Of a stretch of 64,000 bases of DNA, positions 76-46,433 are shown piece by piece. Position numbers and translations under genes: made by a program. Below the pieces are notes generated by a model. It had not been told where the DNA came from and made no database searches. It worked only from the letters and a program-made list of their open reading frames with translations. The first letter of the stretch is position 1. Every line of letters begins with the position of its first letter. Where the stretch lies: the sequence record LR756501.1, one strand, 5' to 3'.

Positions 76-273
76 TTGACTCAATATTTACAAAATTTAG
101 AGGATAACGGTAATACAATTGATATACCAAAGAAATCAGCTTCGGACGCTAAACTAGATATTTTAGAAAGTGTTATCAGAATTTCAAATACCTCTAAAGT
201 TAAAAACACTAATATAGAATTTAGTAACGATGATAACCTAGAGACAAGCAAAATCACAATTACAATAGAATGA
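76..273 (+). CDS. hypothetical protein (start uncertain, may extend upstream)
   Basis: ORF track; ATGA overlap with next gene. Confidence 0.4.
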   Translation: MTQYLQNLEDNGNTIDIPKKSASDAKLDILESVIRISNTSKVKNTNIEFSNDDNLETSKITITIE

Positions 274-839
274 CGGAAGTAACTGAAAATAGGGCTTATG
301 TGAGAATAGATGCTGAAAAAGCTTTATCTAAGTGGGAGCCTATTATAAATGCTTTAAATGTATCTGATCCCGATATAAAAAGGATCATGGCAGATTACGC
401 TGAGCACGACGGTACTATTGAAATTGGAGATAGAACTTTAGAACAAAAGCTTTATAGTTTATTACCAGTTTCTTTAAAGGTATTATCACAGTTAAATTTA
501 AAGAATAAGAAAGTTGTTTTAGTGGACTCTACATATTGGATGAATAAAAATAGAACTGATTTAATAGATAAGATGTTAGATGAAGTAGATCCAATGAATG
601 AACACAAGAAACAAATTAAAATAAATATTGATAGTGATCTATTGGTCACAATAGGAACTGAAAAGACTATAGATCATTGTGAATCAGCGTTAATGAATCA
701 ATTAATCGTTATGATAAATAAAGAATTAGAAAATGGCACTACATTATATTTAACAAAAATGATTAGTTCTATCGATATTGAGCCAAATAGTTTTGGACCT
801 AATAAAATGGTAATGACTTCTTATTATAACGTAGAATAA
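270..839 (+). CDS. hypothetical protein
   Basis: 189-aa ORF in a tightly packed + strand run. Confidence 0.75.
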   Translation: MTEVTENRAYVRIDAEKALSKWEPIINALNVSDPDIKRIMADYAEHDGTIEIGDRTLEQKLYSLLPVSLKVLSQLNLKNKKVVLVDSTYWMNKNRTDLIDKMLDEVDPMNEHKKQIKINIDSDLLVTIGTEKTIDHCESALMNQLIVMINKELENGTTLYLTKMISSIDIEPNSFGPNKMVMTSYYNVE

Positions 840-8429: not shown

Positions 8430-8795
8430 ATGATAAAAGAATTTGAATTATTTATCGAAGGAGTTCGTTGGTACGAAAAAGGGAAACTTGGCGAAAAAGA
8501 AGCTAGAGAAATAGATGAAGTCTTTAAAATAGGTGATAACGTTAGACCAATAGATACGTCTAATATTTATAAATGGCACGATGGGTACGATATAAAACAC
8601 CCTAAACCTGGTGAAGATGGATTCTGGGAAGAATCTAACGCTTTTAAAAATGAAAGTACAGATAGATACTGGGAAGTTAACGGGGTATGTGACTTTAATA
8701 GAGATGGTTACGACGGACAATTAATTCAATTAACTGAGAAATATCCTTGGTATCAAGCAAGAGGATTTAAAAAAGTAAATAAATATGGCGAATAA
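8430..8795 (+). CDS. hypothetical protein with CTS-like N-terminus
   Basis: MIKEFELFIE. Confidence 0.7.
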   Translation: MIKEFELFIEGVRWYEKGKLGEKEAREIDEVFKIGDNVRPIDTSNIYKWHDGYDIKHPKPGEDGFWEESNAFKNESTDRYWEVNGVCDFNRDGYDGQLIQLTEKYPWYQARGFKKVNKYGE

Positions 8796-20960: not shown

Positions 20961-23048
20961 GTGAGTTTCAAAAAATTCCAAATAATTAATCCAGATACAA
21001 TAGGTAGTCCAGAACCAGGACACATATATCTAGGTAGAGACAATATAGGACTTTGGGAAAAATATCCAGACGGAGATTGGGTTTATATAGTAACTGGCGG
21101 TACAACAGGAGCTGGAACTAGTGGTACTAGTGGGGCTGCTGGATCATCTGGCAAAGATGGATCATTCATTGGATCGTCAGGTGTAAGTGGAAGCTCAGGT
21201 ATTTCAAGTAGTTCAGGTGTAAGTGGGAGTTCTGGTAGATCAGGAACAGATGGCACTGCTGGGACTAGTGGATATACTGGATCGTCTGGTACATCTGGTA
21301 CATCAGGTAAAACTGGTACTGCTGGTTCTAGCGGCACTAGTGGCACAACTGGTTCTAGCGGATCATCTGGTAAAGACGGTAATTTTTGGGGGTCTAGTGG
21401 TACATCAGCTACATCAGGTATAAGTGGAGGATACGGCGGAGCATCAAGGAAATGGAGATTCACAACGTCCACTTATCCAGTAACACCTGGTTATTTTTAC
21501 GCCTACGGAACAACATATAATTTAAACGATATAACTTATATAAGAATTAACGAACAAGATGGTGATAGTCAAGGAGTTAATAATTGGCTAAGTTCGTGGA
21601 CAAGTGGAATATTAAAAATAGAGGAGTGGGGGAATCCTCAAAATTTTGGATTATATTCGATAATAAGTGGAGTAACTACAAACAGCTTCATTGTGAGTTA
21701 TTATGAGATAAGTGGAATAACAGCTTATAGTGCTGATGGTGTTTTGACTAATGGTGTAGATTATTTAATATCTTACGTACCTGGTTCTGGTACATCTGGT
21801 GGAGGTAGTGGGAAGAATGGAACTAGTGGTTCTTCTGGTATTGGATATAATTATTTAGATATAACTATTGTAACGGCTTCAACATATACAGTATTACCAA
21901 GTGATACATTTTTATTAGTTGAAACTTTTCCGACTGTTGATGCTGAAGTGATATTACCTCCTTGTAATGGTGGTGGTAGAGTTATTAAAATTAAAAACAA
22001 TAATCTCAAACCTGTAAATATAGTTCCTAATACGTTTCTTTGGTATATTGTAGATACTGGTTATACTATATCTGATTATATTGATACAGAATTTTTTGCC
22101 CCTTGGTTTGTATTCACAGATGGAAATCCAAAATATCTATTGAATCAAGGAGTTATAGATATTGTGGATACTGAAACCCAAGATCAAATTTTACCTAACG
22201 GTGGATTGTGGGAAATAATAAATGAAGAAAATAGAAGTGTAACGATTTTAACAGGTTATACTGAACTACACGGCAATGATTTAATACCAAGATATATTAT
22301 ATGTTCGGGAGGTACTTATAATATATTATTACCACAGGCTTATAGAACGGGTGTAATTTTCAATTTCAAAAATGTTAGTAATGGTACTGTTACAATTAAC
22401 GCTCAACCTAGTGAATATATTGATGGTGCTTCCACTTTAATACTACCAGAGTATGTTTCTTTAGTTGATTCTGGTTATTATAATTGGAGCATATTCGAAG
22501 ATATAGATGTCGGGATAGCTGGATCTAGTGGTACAAGCGGGTCTTCTGGGACCAGTGGTAGTTCAGGAACAAGTGGCACTTCAGGTAGTTCCGGTGTAAG
22601 TCCTAATTTTAATACTGACGCAGATTTGTATTTTGAAACATCGACTAATACTTTATTTACACCAAACATATATTTAACTGGTTCTACTATAACTATAAAA
22701 AATATACAGAACACATCAGATAACGGTAGTAAATTAATACTTAGAGATAACGTTATAATGCAAGTAACAGGCGTTACATCTGGAATTACAGTATCAACAG
22801 GTTATACAACAACAACTAGTGATTATTATATAAGAGTCATAGCTTCAGGCATGACTATAACACTACACGACGCCACTCAATCTTATCAAGAATTAATAAT
22901 TAAAAACGCCTCAAACGGTAATATAAATGTACAAAGACAAAATTCTAACACAATGGACGGTCTAACAACAAAAACATTATTAACACTACAATGTTTAATA
23001 GTAAAAGACGGTGCTATAAATAGTTGGGATATAATATCTTTCTATTAA
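20961..23048 (+). CDS. putative tail fibre/appendage protein with (G-S/T-S/T)n collagen-like repeats
   Basis: GTSGSSGTSG triplet tracts near 21100-21440, 21780-21845 and 22510-22600; fibre-like ILLPQA...FNFKN repeats; late box at 20934. Confidence 0.65.
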   Translation: MSFKKFQIINPDTIGSPEPGHIYLGRDNIGLWEKYPDGDWVYIVTGGTTGAGTSGTSGAAGSSGKDGSFIGSSGVSGSSGISSSSGVSGSSGRSGTDGTAGTSGYTGSSGTSGTSGKTGTAGSSGTSGTTGSSGSSGKDGNFWGSSGTSATSGISGGYGGASRKWRFTTSTYPVTPGYFYAYGTTYNLNDITYIRINEQDGDSQGVNNWLSSWTSGILKIEEWGNPQNFGLYSIISGVTTNSFIVSYYEISGITAYSADGVLTNGVDYLISYVPGSGTSGGGSGKNGTSGSSGIGYNYLDITIVTASTYTVLPSDTFLLVETFPTVDAEVILPPCNGGGRVIKIKNNNLKPVNIVPNTFLWYIVDTGYTISDYIDTEFFAPWFVFTDGNPKYLLNQGVIDIVDTETQDQILPNGGLWEIINEENRSVTILTGYTELHGNDLIPRYIICSGGTYNILLPQAYRTGVIFNFKNVSNGTVTINAQPSEYIDGASTLILPEYVSLVDSGYYNWSIFEDIDVGIAGSSGTSGSSGTSGSSGTSGTSGSSGVSPNFNTDADLYFETSTNTLFTPNIYLTGSTITIKNIQNTSDNGSKLILRDNVIMQVTGVTSGITVSTGYTTTTSDYYIRVIASGMTITLHDATQSYQELIIKNASNGNINVQRQNSNTMDGLTTKTLLTLQCLIVKDGAINSWDIISFY

Positions 23049-41580: not shown

Positions 41581-42443
41581 ACAACGAAATAGCATTTTTT
41601 GATTTAGATGGAACCTTGTGGAATATCAAGAATGACGACATATGGATAATAGATAAAGAAAAACCATTTAGACCAGTTATCATTCTTAATCACCTTGATT
41701 TTTCCTTGATTAAAGCAGGAAGATATAGAAAAGACGAACTACCACTTGATTACAACGGTCAAACATATTTTATAAGTAAAGATTTATTCGAAAAGATTAA
41801 GAAGAAATCTGGAAGTGAAAATATCGAAAGATTTGGTATTTCTTTTATACCTATGCTTAGAAAAGAAATTCTAGACAAAAGAGAAGTTGATATACTTAGC
41901 CATAACATTGAACATCTCAGGTATAATAAATTCGTAGATATTGGTTTACTTACAGCTAGATCAAATCAACGTAATCACTCAGATCTTGTTAATAAACTCA
42001 GATTGGAATTAAAGAAAATTGGAATAGAAATTAGTAAAATATTCTTTGTTGGTAGTGGTGTTCATAGTGGAGTAGATCCTAAATTGAAAAGTTTTGTTTT
42101 ACTGGAACATCTTCTTGGGCTCAAAATTAAAGACGGTAGATTTATATCAGTTAAACAGGATTGGTACAAGAAAGTTAGTTTTTACGATGATGATAGTAAA
42201 AATATTGATTACGCTAACGATATTCAAGATTGTTTTGAAGAACTTTTAAGAAAGACAGACGATGAACTATTCAGAATTATAATAGATAGAATTGAAACAT
42301 TTGAATTAACATTAGACACCTATCTTGTAGTAGATAATGAAGTAAATAGATTTAAGAAAAGTTCGGTAACATTAAGACCCCCATTAAGATTTCCTATAAA
42401 GGAGAGCTTAAAAAATTATAATGATTTTTTAAGGAATGTATAA
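41577..42443 (+). CDS. HAD-superfamily hydrolase-like protein
   Basis: FFDLDGTLW motif I, LLTAR motif II, FYDDD motif IV. Confidence 0.7.
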   Translation: MNNEIAFFDLDGTLWNIKNDDIWIIDKEKPFRPVIILNHLDFSLIKAGRYRKDELPLDYNGQTYFISKDLFEKIKKKSGSENIERFGISFIPMLRKEILDKREVDILSHNIEHLRYNKFVDIGLLTARSNQRNHSDLVNKLRLELKKIGIEISKIFFVGSGVHSGVDPKLKSFVLLEHLLGLKIKDGRFISVKQDWYKKVSFYDDDSKNIDYANDIQDCFEELLRKTDDELFRIIIDRIETFELTLDTYLVVDNEVNRFKKSSVTLRPPLRFPIKESLKNYNDFLRNV

Positions 42444-42753
42444 GATACTCAAAGCGGGTAAGAAGATTGAAAGTGAAGTTCCAGGAATCTACGGCGGTTA
42501 TAAAGTAGATAAAATCTTTGGAACTTTAACTTGTAAATCAGGCATGAGAATGAAGAAAGAAAATAGAGTCTTTTTCCATACTTTAGAAGACGCTGTTAAA
42601 CAGGGATATAGACCTTGTAAGAATTGTAAACCTATTGGTGAAAAAGAATTTCAAACTATAAAACATTTAATACCTGAAAAGACGTTAGAAGATTTCTATA
42701 ATAGAGGTAAAAAGATAAAGACTTTTGAATCTTTCATAAACGACAAAGCATAA
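42436..42753 (+). CDS. Ada metal-binding (Zn) domain protein
   Basis: KIFGTLTC...ENRVFFHTLEDAVKQGYRPCKNCKP. Confidence 0.8.
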   Translation: MYKILKAGKKIESEVPGIYGGYKVDKIFGTLTCKSGMRMKKENRVFFHTLEDAVKQGYRPCKNCKPIGEKEFQTIKHLIPEKTLEDFYNRGKKIKTFESFINDKA

Positions 42754-42782
42754 AAAAACCCAGTCTCACGACTGGGTTTTTT
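42753..42782. terminator. bidirectional terminator (CCCAGTC family)
   Basis: AAAAAAACCCAGTC-TCAC-GACTGGGTTTTTT; same stem at about 49400 and 63845. Confidence 0.85.
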
Positions 42783-42784
42783 AG

Positions 42785-42985
42785 TGCCCCTACCTTCACA
42801 CCTGTCTTCCTCCAGGTCGACTTACTTGTCTTATCGGATCCATAATGGACATTTTTTAGTCAGAGGTTCACTTTGTAACTTGACTTCGTAACCGTTACCA
42901 GTTACAAGATAGGGTGCTGCTCTGATATTGGTGGTCTTCCCGACACTTGTGTTTTTCGCGCTTTCTGAAGGACATCTAAAACAAA
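42785..42985 (-). ncRNA. candidate structured RNA, domain C
   Basis: GC-richer noncoding; nested pairings TCAGAG/CTCTGA, TTGTAACT/AGTTACAA, ACCTG/CAGGT, CCTTCA/TGAAGG; TTTATATAT box upstream, terminator downstream. Confidence 0.55.
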
Positions 42986-43004
42986 CCAATATATAAAAGA
43001 AAGA

Positions 43005-43362
43005 AATGAAAAAAATAATTTGATGGGAGTCCTGACTACCCATAGTCCTCGGAATTCGTCAATCATTATTCACCCACAATCCACAAAAGTGATCGGCCCT
43101 TGTGTTTTACCTTTCGACACCCCCTTGCGGGGCAGTCACATCAGGTGATTGGGAGGTTTGTTTCCTCCAACCAGATACAGCCATCAGTATAGCTCTATAC
43201 GATTTGTCTGGTTCTTACGTCACTCACGGTTGGCCAACCGCGGCTACTTCAGGTTTATGATACGAAAACTGTAACATCCGCTCCGTCAGGCTTTTCAGCC
43301 AACGGCTACAGTGCGTTAGGGGCTGGCGACCCCTTGTTCCGCCACAAATTATTTTTTCATAC
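43005..43362 (-). ncRNA. candidate large structured RNA, domain B
   Basis: Ends pair (ATGAAAAAATAATTTG inverted repeat); GGCT-GAAA-AGCC and CCCC-GCAA-GGGG GNRA hairpins, CGGTT/AACCG, AACCAGA/TCTGGTT, GGAGG/CCTCC. Confidence 0.65.
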
Positions 43363-43363
43363 T

Positions 43364-43374
43364 TTCAAAGAACT
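43364..43374 (-). promoter_or_regulatory. boxA-like antitermination element AGTTCTTTGAA
   Basis: Identical 11-mer also at 43700-43710, each directly 5' of a structured domain. Confidence 0.5.
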
Positions 43375-43379
43375 TGATC

Positions 43380-43695
43380 CACAATGTTCGTAAACTTCGT
43401 AACTGTCGTGGACAATTCAAAATAGAACTAAGTCGTAATAGCTGTTACATTTTACAGTAACAATTTAAGTGCGAAGGGCCTCCACCTTTCGGTCATACAC
43501 AGTCTCACTTTCCTCACACACTATTACAGCCGACTGAACCTAAACTTTTACTCAGTCCTATAAGAGCTTCAAATGGAAGCGAGTGCCCAAACTCGCAAAT
43601 GAGGGAAAATAAAGCCTAGTATATAGGGAATTTAAGCCTCACATAACTATCCATATCAATACCCAATTAAGGACTACTTGGAATCGTTTACCATT
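43380..43695 (-). ncRNA. candidate structured RNA, domain A
   Basis: AGTCCT/AGGACT, GCGAGT/ACTCGC, GCTTC/GAAGC, GACTGA/TCAGTC, GTAATAG/CTATTAC, ACC-GAAA-GGT, GTTAC/GTAAC. Confidence 0.55.
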
Positions 43696-43727
43696 TATAT
43701 TCAAAGAACTTGCTTCGAATTCTTATA

Positions 43728-43887
43728 CAAAGATAAGAAGTCTTGTTGAGATAAAAAAATCTTTTGTAAGAATTTTTATCAAATTTTAAAATACCTACTT
43801 GTGGGTTGAATGGTTATCTCGCCTTTCAGTATTCAGTCAGTCTGTGGACTGAAAATTTGATTATCTCATTTTGACTATACAAAGATA
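43728..43887 (-). promoter_or_regulatory. two tandem Bacteroidota-type promoters driving the ncRNA locus
   Basis: TATCTTTG at 43728-43735 and 43880-43887, both in the context TTTTTTTATCTC-N13-TATCTTTGTATA. Confidence 0.6.
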
Positions 43888-44044
43888 CGCCACTTTCACG
43901 AGATAAAAAAATTATTTGATAAATTTTTTAAAACAACACTAAACAAAGAGCTTTTACTAAATCGTCAGTAATAACAGATTTTATATATTATATATACTCA
44001 CGAAATTCCTTTGTTTTAAAAAAAATTCAAGAAAATATAAAACT

Positions 44045-44215
44045 TTGAAAGACAGACCTTTAAAAGAAAAAGAGAGTATTTGGCTTTGTCCAGACTGTGA
44101 TGGTAAAGGTTATATTGATAAAGGTCAATGTCCTCTATGTAAAGGTAAAGGTGAACTTAGATTTCCTACCACTTCCTCTCAAAAGGATTTCGAAGATCCC
44201 CAGCCTTCTGATTAA
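44045..44215 (+). CDS. small DnaJ-type CxxCxGxG zinc-finger protein (56 aa, TTG start, not in ORF track)
   Basis: CPDCDGKG...CPLCKGKG; overlaps the terminase 3' end by about 50 nt. Confidence 0.5.
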   Translation: MKDRPLKEKESIWLCPDCDGKGYIDKGQCPLCKGKGELRFPTTSSQKDFEDPQPSD

Positions 44216-46433
44216 ATGGTGATAAGAAAGGTATAGGTTTTATTTCAGGTTTAACTTTAGGATAGAATCTTTTATACGCTCCACTAAATGATTGAAAATC
44301 AACCATTGATCCGTCGTCTTTACTACCTAAAAATTTAAGTATAACTCCTTTTTCTTTTTCTGTAATATTAAAATCTGAATAAGTATCTACCATGTTCTTG
44401 TAATAGTTATTATCAAATAAACTACTTAAATTTATAAGCGACATTACACAGTCATCATTACCTGTTTCCGAACGATAAGTGATCTCCCCGTTTGGAGTCT
44501 CTTTTTTGGAGAATGATTTTAATTCTATGATATTCTTCTCGTTATGAAGTACTAGATTATCTTTCTTCACAGCGTCTTGGAAATCTTTTAGGAGTAATTT
44601 CTTATTGTAACCTATAAGTAATCCTATTTTTGGTTTGGGGTCTGTTTCTCTGTGTTTATATCTGGCAAATATAGCGTCCATAAAATCATTGTTATCATTG
44701 AATACGTGACGCATATTGTTAATTAAATCGTTGCCCAGATTCTTATTCATTTCCACCACTATCTTAACCTTCTCGGGATCAAATATTTCAAATACTAAAA
44801 GATATAATATGTGAGCCACTTCATTTATAGAGTAGACGTTATTTCTGAATAATCCTATTTGTTCTAGTTTGAATAAGTCATATTTATTGGAATAAAAGTC
44901 TTTCTTTTTTTCTATTAGTTTTTCGTCTTTCATCATTAATCTAAAGATGTTAAACACAGTATAATCAAGACCTAACCCTTCTGCCAAGTCTATACCTATT
45001 GTTATATAATAATCTTTAGCTTTGGCTAAATCAAATATTTCTGGATGATCTAGTAAGAAAGTTAGACTATCGTAAGGTAGTGTTAATTTCTTTTCGAAAT
45101 TTTCTAAATGAGGAGTTCCAAATTCGTATTGTTCGTTCATGAAACTTTCAAACATAACACTATCGAACAACAATTTATCGTCTGTAATGAACTGAATCTC
45201 GTACTCTTGATTGAACATCGCCTGGCCACCAATAAGAGATGTTTGCTCTTCTTGCCAGTTAGTTATTCTTACTACTTCGGGTAAAGGTATAACTTCATTT
45301 ATTCTTACTTGCCTTATCTCATCTATTTTACAATTATCTCTTACAGTTTTACCGTCGTCTTCGAAGAATTTAATGAAATACCAAGTTTCTTGTTCAAGTC
45401 TTTTACTATACATCTCGTAACCCAATTCCTTTAAACGGTTTAATATTTCTTCTTGGGTCACGTTGTATTGTCTCATTTTATGTTCAAGAAACATAAACTT
45501 GGTATCTCTTCTACCTTTAACTTGATGCCAGTAGACACGCATGGCTTCGTATTTATTCCATCTTGGATCTTCTTTAGGTCTTTCAGCGTCTACCAATAAT
45601 TCCCAGAATAAATTATAACCATCTGGCGTTGATGTTATAATAATTTTAGAATTTTCTACCTGTACAACAGTAGGTACAACAGCACCGTAGTACTGACGTA
45701 CAATATTCTCTGGTACTTTCGCGAACTCATCGAGATATAACAAGTCAATGGTAAAACCGATGGATGGGTCCTTAGATCTCGCCTGACTCTGAATTCTACT
45801 ATTGTTATCAAAGGCAATCTGCTTTTCGTTCCAGTTTGTTACACCAGTCTTCAAAAAGAAAGGTAATAACTTGTAAATATCTTTTATCTTTCTAATAATT
45901 TCTTTTACAGTATCACCTTTATTAGCCACGATCATAACACCCTTATCGTCATTAAACATAACAAGGTGTAATATAACAATAGAAGCAGATACAGTATTAA
46001 GATTTAATATATCGTTAGCGTAATAACTATGTTCGTTAGACTTTATAGATAAGTCAAACATAGATACTTTATTATTTAATTTGTTAATTGATTTTATTTT
46101 AGAAAGACCTTTCTTTGTTAGAATTATATCGTTAAGAGTTAAATCTTTAACGAATTTAATCATATGTCCTTCGCAGAATATACTATGTATATCGGCACAC
46201 TTTATCTTTAAACCATTTTCAAGTTCAAGTTCGTGTATAGCGTATGGTTGTGTGAAATTGATCTCTTCAATAGGTACAAATCCGTAGTCTGTTTCAACTG
46301 AAAGATTTTCTAATGGTAGAATGTTTATAACCTTTTTCAGAGGATCGTTTTGATCAAATACAACGTTTCTATATTCGTATTTCTCAATTAATTCTAGTAA
46401 TTTATATATAACTCTTCTTAAAAATTTTCGCAT
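44166..46433 (-). CDS. terL: terminase large subunit, C-terminal part, preceded by a 146-aa split C-intein
   Basis: IntC ...KCADIH...MFDLSIK...YYANDILNLN|TVSAS; Walker B IDLLYLDEFA; nuclease IDLAEGLGLDY and NDDCVM. Confidence 0.92.
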   Translation of the reverse strand: MRKFLRRVIYKLLELIEKYEYRNVVFDQNDPLKKVINILPLENLSVETDYGFVPIEEINFTQPYAIHELELENGLKIKCADIHSIFCEGHMIKFVKDLTLNDIILTKKGLSKIKSINKLNNKVSMFDLSIKSNEHSYYANDILNLNTVSASIVILHLVMFNDDKGVMIVANKGDTVKEIIRKIKDIYKLLPFFLKTGVTNWNEKQIAFDNNSRIQSQARSKDPSIGFTIDLLYLDEFAKVPENIVRQYYGAVVPTVVQVENSKIIITSTPDGYNLFWELLVDAERPKEDPRWNKYEAMRVYWHQVKGRRDTKFMFLEHKMRQYNVTQEEILNRLKELGYEMYSKRLEQETWYFIKFFEDDGKTVRDNCKIDEIRQVRINEVIPLPEVVRITNWQEEQTSLIGGQAMFNQEYEIQFITDDKLLFDSVMFESFMNEQYEFGTPHLENFEKKLTLPYDSLTFLLDHPEIFDLAKAKDYYITIGIDLAEGLGLDYTVFNIFRLMMKDEKLIEKKKDFYSNKYDLFKLEQIGLFRNNVYSINEVAHILYLLVFEIFDPEKVKIVVEMNKNLGNDLINNMRHVFNDNNDFMDAIFARYKHRETDPKPKIGLLIGYNKKLLLKDFQDAVKKDNLVLHNEKNIIELKSFSKKETPNGEITYRSETGNDDCVMSLINLSSLFDNNYYKNMVDTYSDFNITEKEKGVILKFLGSKDDGSMVDFQSFSGAYKRFYPKVKPEIKPIPFLSPFNQKAGDLRNPFERKW
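45996..46433 (-). mobile_element. split intein, C-terminal fragment (IntC)
   Basis: Hint-fold blocks B, F, G; terminal Asn followed by Thr+1; no endonuclease. Confidence 0.85.

Follow-up and report, generated by a model that had tools for sequence, protein, structure and literature searches.

The manA RNA motif (Rfam RF01745) of T4-like cyanophages and marine bacteria, which is about 190 nt long and was first classed as a riboswitch candidate in 5' UTRs (PMC2864571), was recently reported in a preprint to form, in vitro, RNA-only decamers and a 60-mer cage held by kissing loops between molecules (bioRxiv 10.64898/2026.07.01.735769). ROOL and GOLLD are large ornate phage and prophage RNAs that likewise form RNA-only cages, rRNA operons are transcribed with the help of boxA, NusB-S10, NusA, and NusG, and huge phages such as Lak and related megaphages carry large tRNA/tmRNA arrays. 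The locus described here, a 1.2-kb gene-free stretch on the minus strand of a huge-phage genome, was compared with each of these systems. The window analyzed was a 64,000-nucleotide stretch of LR756501/LR756503, a 735,411-bp uncultured phage genome with no annotation.

Organization of the locus

The ORF-free gap at 42754-44165 is the longest in the window, and the locus itself (42753-43911, minus strand) has no conserved ORF; the ORFs of 54 and 70 aa on the RNA strand are not conserved in relatives, and no ORF in the gap is conserved in four homologous loci. A sequence-only reading had proposed a noncoding locus with three ornate RNA domains (A, B, and C), tandem promoters, boxA-like sites, and a terminator, and this observation was confirmed with several corrections. 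It is not the only GC-rich stretch, because 21001-21500 has 46% GC, although that is a collagen-repeat ORF; domain A is two cassettes rather than one; the 'TATATA box' is not conserved; and only domain B is beyond doubt ornate. The central inference of that reading, one or more new large phage ncRNAs transcribed like a stable-RNA operon, is supported by the comparative evidence, although it missed the distant relationship to manA, the usual position of the family in tRNA arrays, and the self-complementary loops described below.

The 12-mer TATCTTTGTATA occurs exactly twice in 64 kb, at 43887-43876 and 43735-43724, and both copies follow TTTTTTTATCTC. Promoter P1 (43876..43911) comprises a T-run/TTTTTTTATCTC (43911-43900) and the -7 box TATCTTTG (43887-43880), which fits the probable Bacteroidota consensus TAnnTTTG. 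It is conserved in the related loci designated L010, L006, and L083, and the same GTATCTTTG box heads tRNA arrays in other loci. Promoter P2 (43724..43759) is a duplicate of P1 (TTTTTTTATCTC at 43759-43748; TATCTTTG at 43735-43728) and is a 37-nt insertion specific to this lineage, which is present in the window and L083 but absent from L010 and L006. Between the two promoters lies a leader (43795..43870) with a small hairpin at 43852-43833 followed by CUGAAAGGCGAGAUAACCAUUCAACCCA, which is conserved at about 85-100% in four lineages, with one compensatory pair in the hairpin, and was found only in this lineage. At the other end, a 13-bp stem followed by a T-run forms a strong intrinsic terminator (42753..42782), which is shared with the convergent Ada-Zn ORF that ends at 42753 and is conserved in relatives with compensatory changes.

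The motif AAGTTCTTTGAA occurs exactly twice in the window, at 43711-43700 and 43375-43364, and the second copy of AAGUUCUUUGAA lies 3 nt upstream of domain B. The AGTTCTTTGAA motif behaves like a boxA and matches the NusB-binding B. subtilis consensus AUGAUCUUUGAAA at 11 of 13 positions (PMC13753749). In 620 kb of related loci, 23 distinct contexts were found, 22 of them on the strand of the RNA genes; typical positions were 17-27 nt after a TATCTTTG promoter box, before tRNAs, or before domain-B copies, and the motif also separates RNA cassettes. The same motif, or its variants UGAUCUUUGAAA and UGAUCUUUGAUA (which occur in L014 and L012), precedes domain-B copies in the loci L006, L008, L012, L014, L022, L029, and L073. 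Literature searches for the boxA string found nothing relevant, and no published boxA sequence was found for Bacteroidota.

Cassette A1 (43533..43699) is a closed, probably structured RNA, with 33 predicted pairs, of which 13 have compensatory changes, but this suggestive covariation comes from only 3 lineages. Cassette A2 (43376..43532) is variable, and relatives carry a different sequence here, preceded by a further boxA-like motif. Cassette C (42790..43005) is conserved in sequence only (CCUUCAGAAAG at 42972-42961; GGAUCCGAUAAGAC; CCUGGAGGAAGACAGGU at 42816-42800). Domains A and C fold no better than shuffled sequence, with MFE z of -0.7 and -0.2, respectively, and A2 and C have no structural support. 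Cassettes A1 and C and the leader were searched for outside the lineage using nhmmer, two pattern scans of viral contigs, and a fuzzy motif search, and no relatives were found. The operon is conserved directly downstream of TerL in five relatives, whereas L083 keeps P1, leader, P2, boxA-like motif, A1, and A2 but replaces B with other cassettes bounded by the boxA-like motif. Cassettes are swapped between related phages at these boundaries, and such differences between near-identical phages point to modular exchange of RNA genes.

Domain B, a structured RNA family of huge phages

Domain B (43006..43360) is a 355-nt RNA with a terminal helix, about 13 helices, and a pseudoknot. Hits were obtained on 25 viral, 52 metagenome, and 3 MAG contigs, including gut, rumen, and other metagenomes, and gave 63 distinct copies, of which 54 have same-strand tRNA/tmRNA in the locus, 46 have it within 500 nt, and none has an opposite-strand tRNA. 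The 3 MAG contigs, from uncultured organisms, were the only hits in a scan of a genome collection and are probably mis-binned phage contigs; no cellular homologue was found. In an alignment of 25 diverse copies, 62 base pairs, including the pseudoknot, were 96.4% paired, compared with about 40% when the partners were slid, and 45 showed compensatory changes. The covariation score was 0.68 against 0.10-0.12, and 0 of 500 shuffles reached it. The 16-bp terminal helix (43360-43345 with 43022-43006) is kept with unrelated sequences. MFE z was -3.5 on the minus strand and -2.2 on the plus strand, and the conserved G-U pairs also support minus-strand specificity. In pseudoknot PK1 (43180..43327), loop GCCA (43327-43324) pairs with UGGC (43183-43180), all 4 pairs show compensatory changes, and 94% of cells are paired; this pairing could be within or between molecules. 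A peripheral insertion with GCAA and GAAA tetraloops (43109..43147) is lineage-specific, being absent from 22 of 25 representatives, with a shorter version in L006 and L008.

Two apical loops stay self-complementary while their sequence changes, which suggests pairing between molecules, although palindromic loop cores could in principle reflect a constraint on the DNA. Hairpin P6 (43223..43243) has the apical loop UUGGCCAA (GGCC = 43235-43232) and is followed by the invariant GAGUGACGUAAGAA (43225-43212), for which literature searches also found nothing relevant; the central tetrad is GGCC, GUAC, GCGC, GAUC, GGCU, or GGUC in 48 of 49 distinct copies. Hairpin P10 (43082..43104) has the loop CCGAUCA (GAUC = 43094-43091), and 19 of 25 distinct hairpins have a palindrome of at least 4 nt in the loop and 12 of 25 have at least 6 nt, whereas shuffled loops give 36% and 6%. 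A pairing partner was also sought for the variable loop of hairpin P12, but no convincing covarying column was found.

Rfam searches at gathering thresholds gave nothing for the whole window, and searches by E-value on the locus gave only a terminator look-alike (BTnc231) and weak manA; no confident hit was obtained, and the family is missing from Rfam 15. ARAGORN found no tRNA or tmRNA in the window. There was no match to models of RNase P RNA, tmRNA, tRNA, 6S, SRP, group I/II introns, or self-cleaving ribozymes; RNase P, considered because GAGGAAAGU occurs in A2, has no model support, and tmRNA and tRNAs are found next to domain-B copies, not over them.

Interpretation of the locus

The explanation favored here, with moderate confidence and on sequence evidence alone, without transcript data of any kind, is that the locus is a phage stable-RNA operon that expresses a manA-related RNA likely to oligomerize. 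Host RNA polymerase is inferred to start at one or two Bacteroidota-type promoters and to transcribe a leader, each AAGUUCUUUGAA in the nascent RNA would act as a boxA that loads host NusB-S10, and the polymerase would then read through an untranslated, highly structured transcript to the final terminator, as in rRNA operons. The cassettes are probably cut apart. By analogy with manA, ROOL, and GOLLD, domain B probably forms RNA-only dimers, rings, or cages, and a role in sequestration or scaffolding linked to tRNA and translation is only a guess. The operon also suggests that phages use the host rRNA antitermination system for their own stable RNAs in Bacteroidota, a phylum where that system is hardly studied. 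A further possibility, which is tentative, is that domain-B RNAs are a new class of phage-encoded, self-assembling RNA particle, in which two homotypic kissing loops per monomer, perhaps with the covarying pseudoknot acting between molecules, would build rings or cages in the infected cell. The RNA would be made in bulk from rRNA-like, Nus-antiterminated operons or tRNA arrays, the particles would serve as an RNA-only compartment or a decoy acting on tRNAs or translation factors, and manA would be the small cyanophage branch of one broad superfamily of phage cage RNAs.

Without otherwise changing the operon explanation, domain B could instead work as a monomer or simple dimer that binds tRNA, a tRNA-processing or repair enzyme, or a host anticodon nuclease, and so act as a decoy, chaperone, or scaffold rather than a large cage. 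The position of the family in co-oriented tRNA/tmRNA arrays, the presence in the same arrays of other tRNA-related mimics (YrlA-like hits and a 23S L1-stalk-like fragment), and two conserved GGUA...AAUCC hairpins that, in our reading, end like tRNA T-arms are consistent with this, but two independent self-complementary loops are more than a dimer needs and the RNA in this window is not near any tRNA; this reading was judged unlikely. It is similarly doubtful that AAGTTCTTTGAA is, instead of a boxA, an internal promoter element for a phage sigma factor or an RNase cleavage signal that marks cassette boundaries. The motif lies 3-10 nt before cassette starts and ends in TTTG like the Bacteroidota -7 box, but it lacks the TA of TAnnTTTG, it also occurs just downstream of bona fide-looking promoters, where a second promoter is not needed, and it resembles a NusB-binding boxA as noted above.

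The remaining alternatives were considered less likely still. That domain B or its neighbors are ribozymes that cut the cassettes apart is improbable; the fold is complex, with invariant single-stranded stretches such as GAGUGACGUAAGAA, and the cassettes must be separated somehow, but no Rfam ribozyme, RNase P, or intron model gave a hit at E of 10 or below, and in tRNA arrays RNase P and RNase Z would suffice for release. A cis-regulatory element or riboswitch controlling a downstream gene, as first proposed for manA, with which domain B shares modules, is very unlikely, because domain B is followed here by cassette C, a terminator, and a convergent gene, is flanked elsewhere by tRNAs or its own terminator, and has no conserved downstream ORF. 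An action of the palindromes and motifs on DNA, for example as a packaging site next to the terminase gene, an origin, or operators, with incidental RNA structure, is also very unlikely. The locus lies directly downstream of TerL in this lineage and GGTTGGCCAACC is a perfect DNA palindrome, but covariation keeps G-U pairs that would be A-C mismatches on the other strand, most family members lie in tRNA arrays and not next to TerL, and the boxA-like motif is strand-specific in nearly every context.

Comparison with described systems

The similarity of domain B to manA is weak but consistent, and suggests a distant, roughly doubled relative. manA was the only Rfam family that hit domain-B copies recurrently, with 19 hits of 16-26 bits at the right place and strand, but the scores, 12 bits in the window, 19-20 bits in Lak phages, and 16-26 bits in 17 further copies, are far below the gathering threshold of 55.2 bits. 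The modules occur in the same order, namely GUGaCUGAAUAA-hairpin-UAAGG internal loop, then GACGUAA..., then a UG-GGUA...AAUCC hairpin. The internal loop CUGAAUAA / UAAG around a hairpin, closed by a short helix, was identified by cmscan alignment, and pairs 25-26/59-60 and 34-39/45-50 covary. Two sub-models of domain B were also searched against manA loci. The model of the 5' module, R1, gave its best hit in each of 7 cyanophage loci inside the genuine manA RNA, but these hits score only 10-13 bits, a level that background hits in phage DNA also reach, so that only their consistent position counts, and the 7 manA RNAs are not independent; the other model, R2, proved unspecific. The 3' hairpin UG-GGUA...AAUCC is present twice in domain B, as P8 and P12, and P12 (43023..43043), GGGUAGUCAGGACUCCC, is almost identical to the last hairpin of genuine manA RNAs (GGUAGUCAGGAAUCC against manA GGUAUACAGGAAUCC). 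Both RNAs are carried by phages, and the kissing loops of manA may have a counterpart in the two self-complementary loops of domain B. Domain B differs in its length of 300-355 nt, with the manA-like modules present twice, an added terminal helix, the palindromic P6 hairpin, and an apparently different pseudoknot, and it lies in tRNA/tmRNA arrays or an RNA operon of gut and rumen huge phages, flanked by tRNAs, terminators, or other RNA cassettes, whereas genuine manA lies between protein genes.

Like ROOL and GOLLD, domain B is phage-borne and non-coding, with a complex fold and likely homo-oligomerization through loop-loop contacts, but it is about half their size. No hit to GOLLD, ROOL, OLE, raiA, or HEARO was obtained at E of 10 or below on the locus or on Lak copies, and none appears among 99 listed matches on 20 loci. 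With respect to rRNA-operon antitermination, the motif AAGUUCUUUGAAA resembles B. subtilis AUGAUCUUUGAAA and E. coli UGCUCUUUAACA, lies in the leader after the promoter and again in spacers before each structured RNA, and has a small hairpin upstream in a transcript that is untranslated; the operon differs in being carried by a phage, in encoding neither rRNA nor, in this window, tRNA, and in having up to four boxA-like copies in about 1 kb. Finally, most domain-B copies are one unit of the tRNA/tmRNA arrays of huge phages, on the same strand and 7-300 nt from the next tRNA, with the same promoter and boxA-like signals, whereas the copy in the window has left the tRNA array and sits in a dedicated operon with other non-tRNA cassettes.

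Genomic setting and transcription signals

The window is identical to positions around 607,760-609,010 of LR756501/LR756503, a 735,411-bp 'uncultured phage' record without annotation, and the only other phage records with any similarity were those of Prevotella Lak megaphages. On the minus strand the locus follows a 755-aa large terminase (TerL, 44166-46433) and ends against a convergent small ORF of 105 aa (42436-42753, plus strand), which has an Ada metal-binding (zinc-binding) domain and shares the terminator of the RNA operon. The N-terminus of the terminase (46116-46403, minus strand; residues 11-106) gave a sub-threshold hit to the intein splicing domain (26 bits against a cut-off of 35.8), and the ATPase domain starts only at about residue 140. 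This extension is conserved in relatives and may be an intein remnant or a Hint-like domain. The gap of about 1.4 kb is the longest ORF-free stretch in the window, and the short ORFs inside it are not conserved in four homologous loci. The sequence-only reading had described the locus as the only long ORF-free, GC-richer stretch; other GC-rich spots are coding, and the peak at 21001-21500, for example, is explained by a 695-aa ORF with collagen triple-helix repeats (20961-23048, plus strand).

The sequence TATCTTTGTATA occurs exactly twice in 64 kb, both times in the locus and both times 12-13 nt after TTTTTTTATCTC, and its TATCTTTG box appears to fit the Bacteroidota -7 consensus TAnnTTTG. 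The second of these putative promoters lies in a 37-nt insertion that only the window and L083, a 152-kb viral contig, have. The motif AAGTTCTTTGAA also occurs exactly twice, again only here, and the locus is closed by a terminator with a 13-bp stem.

The latter motif was compared with known boxA sequences. The B. subtilis rrn leader motif AUGAUCUUUGAAA was reported in 2026 to bind NusB directly, and the E. coli consensus is UGCUCUUUAACA (PMC13753749). The phage motif AAGUUCUUUGAAA matches the B. subtilis consensus at 11 of 13 positions, and variants in relatives (UGAUCUUUGAAA, UGAUCUUUGAUA) match it even better. In 620 kb of related loci, GTTCTTTGAA was found in 23 distinct contexts, 22 of them on the strand of the RNA genes; it lies 17-27 nt downstream of TATCTTTG promoter boxes, just before tRNAs, or 3-10 nt before copies of domain B, the central RNA of the locus. 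Relatives of the window have three or four copies, one before each cassette. This is the arrangement of leader and spacer boxA in rRNA operons, although a boxA function is inferred here from sequence alone.

Cassettes flanking domain B

For cassette A1, the first of the two cassettes upstream of domain B, 33 pairs were predicted, 13 of them compensatory, but from only three lineages. Cassette A2, the second, differs between lineages. Cassette C, downstream of domain B, has invariant blocks and an invariant closing helix but no informative covariation. Domain A (A1 and A2) and cassette C fold no better than shuffled sequences, and neither these cassettes nor the leader were found outside the TerL-linked lineage. 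The contig L083, in which TerL is 96% identical, keeps the stretch from the first promoter through A2 almost base for base, but in place of domain B (8530-8760, minus strand) it has two other short cassettes, each preceded by GTTCTTTGAA, while the first bases of the domain B terminal helix (GAAAAAATAATTT) are kept. This shows that cassettes are exchanged at these boundaries.

Distribution and structure of domain B

Domain B is a real and widespread RNA. The Lak-B phages hold an element of roughly 300 nt that aligns with domain B end to end and lies between tRNA-Thr and tRNA-Met. A pattern derived from the invariant core (TGAGTGACGTAAGAA N4-6 CAAAYCG) found 25 viral contigs, 52 metagenome contigs, and only 3 contigs among 185,579 species genomes, those 3 all coming from uncultured bins. 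Of 63 distinct copies, 54 have tRNA or tmRNA genes on the same strand in the retrieved DNA, 46 of them within 500 nt, and none has one on the opposite strand. In L035, one of the loci with domain B, a second, exact copy of the 5' part of domain B starts 412 nt downstream of the first (1-95 and 204-515, minus strand). The two are separated by a tRNA-like element ending in CCA, and the second is cut off by the contig end; this is either a tandem duplication or an assembly repeat.

At curated thresholds, Rfam identified dozens of tRNAs and three tmRNAs in these loci but nothing over the domain B copies. The tmRNA genes, one of them permuted, lie in the same arrays as domain B copies: 21 nt downstream in L033 (2620-2962, minus strand), about 400 nt downstream in L012 (2918-3361, plus strand), and about 560 nt downstream in L075 (1342-1606, minus strand). 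In L077 (3034-3119, minus strand), a phage tRNA array that also holds a domain B copy contains a fragment matching positions 2128-2213 of bacterial 23S rRNA, which scored 53.8 bits, above the threshold. These positions probably belong to the L1-stalk region, and the fragment may be a phage-encoded L1-stalk mimic. Sub-threshold matches to YrlA (Y RNA-like), at 45.7, 38.2, and 24.5 bits against a threshold of 69, were found in the same tRNA arrays as domain B in L041 (2080-2203), L042 (2620-2696), and L065 (955-1069), all on the plus strand.

Structure was analyzed using 25 representatives below 90% identity. RNAalifold predicted 51 pairs, 35 of them with compensatory changes, and an additional scan added a helix and a pseudoknot between the loop of the first hairpin and a distant UGGC. 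Over the resulting 62 pairs, 96.4% of cells were paired, compared with 37-44% when the partners were slid; 45 pairs had changes on both sides, compared with 16-26 when the partners were slid; and the covariation score was 0.68, compared with 0.10-0.12 when the partners were slid. None of 500 shuffles reached the observed values. A terminal helix of 9-16 bp is present in nearly all representatives, with unrelated sequences, and the strand is fixed by invariant or frequent G-U pairs. The window copy folds 3.5 sd better than shuffles, against -2.2 for the other strand.

Comparison with manA and self-complementary loops

Among 4,227 Rfam families, manA (RF01745) is the only one that hits domain B copies repeatedly. 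It scored 12 bits in the window, 19-20 bits in Lak phages, and 16-26 bits in 17 of 20 further loci, always at the right place and strand, but these scores are far below its threshold of 55.2. The alignments show shared modules in the same order, and both the 5' part and the 3' part of domain B resemble manA, as if the unit were doubled. Genuine manA RNAs from seven cyanophages carry GGUAUACAGGAAUCC where domain B has GGUAGUCAGGAAUCC. A model of the domain B 5' module gave its best hit in each of the seven cyanophage loci inside the manA RNA; however, these reciprocal scores (10-13 bits) are no higher than background hits in other phage DNA, and the seven manA RNAs are related to each other, so this result was deemed consistent rather than conclusive. 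A second sub-model was unspecific. In addition, manA lies between protein genes and not near tRNAs. Domain B is thus not a manA member by the Rfam criterion, but it is probably a distant, enlarged relative.

In hairpin P6 of domain B, the four central loop bases are GGCC, GUAC, GCGC, or GAUC (all four possible G..C palindromes), or the wobble versions GGCU and GGUC, in 48 of 49 distinct copies. The two middle bases covary although they are neighbors, so they cannot pair with each other within one hairpin, but they can pair with the same loop of a second molecule. A second hairpin, P10, shows the same behavior with other sequences, including UCAUGA, UAAUUA, UAGCUA, UGAUCA, GCUAGC, and CGCG. Of 25 distinct P10 hairpins, 12 have a palindrome of at least 6 nt in the loop, against 6% of shuffled loops.

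The observation made in the sequence-only reading is confirmed, and its main inference, that the locus encodes one or more new large phage ncRNAs transcribed like a stable-RNA operon, is supported by comparative evidence, although transcription and processing are themselves inferred. The RNA family and its size, its normal home in tRNA arrays, the probable link to manA, and the two self-pairing loops are new beyond that reading.

In a 2026 preprint, manA RNAs were reported to form decamers and a 60-subunit icosahedral-like cage held by kissing loops between molecules. Two homotypic contacts per monomer of domain B would allow chains, rings, or cages, and the covarying 'pseudoknot' could also act between molecules, all of which is inferred from sequence. 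Domain B of this lineage also carries a peripheral insertion with GNRA tetraloops (43109-43147, minus strand), GCAA and GAAA in the window and a shorter GAAA hairpin in the domain B copies of L006 and L008, and peripheral GNRA contacts take part in one manA assembly.
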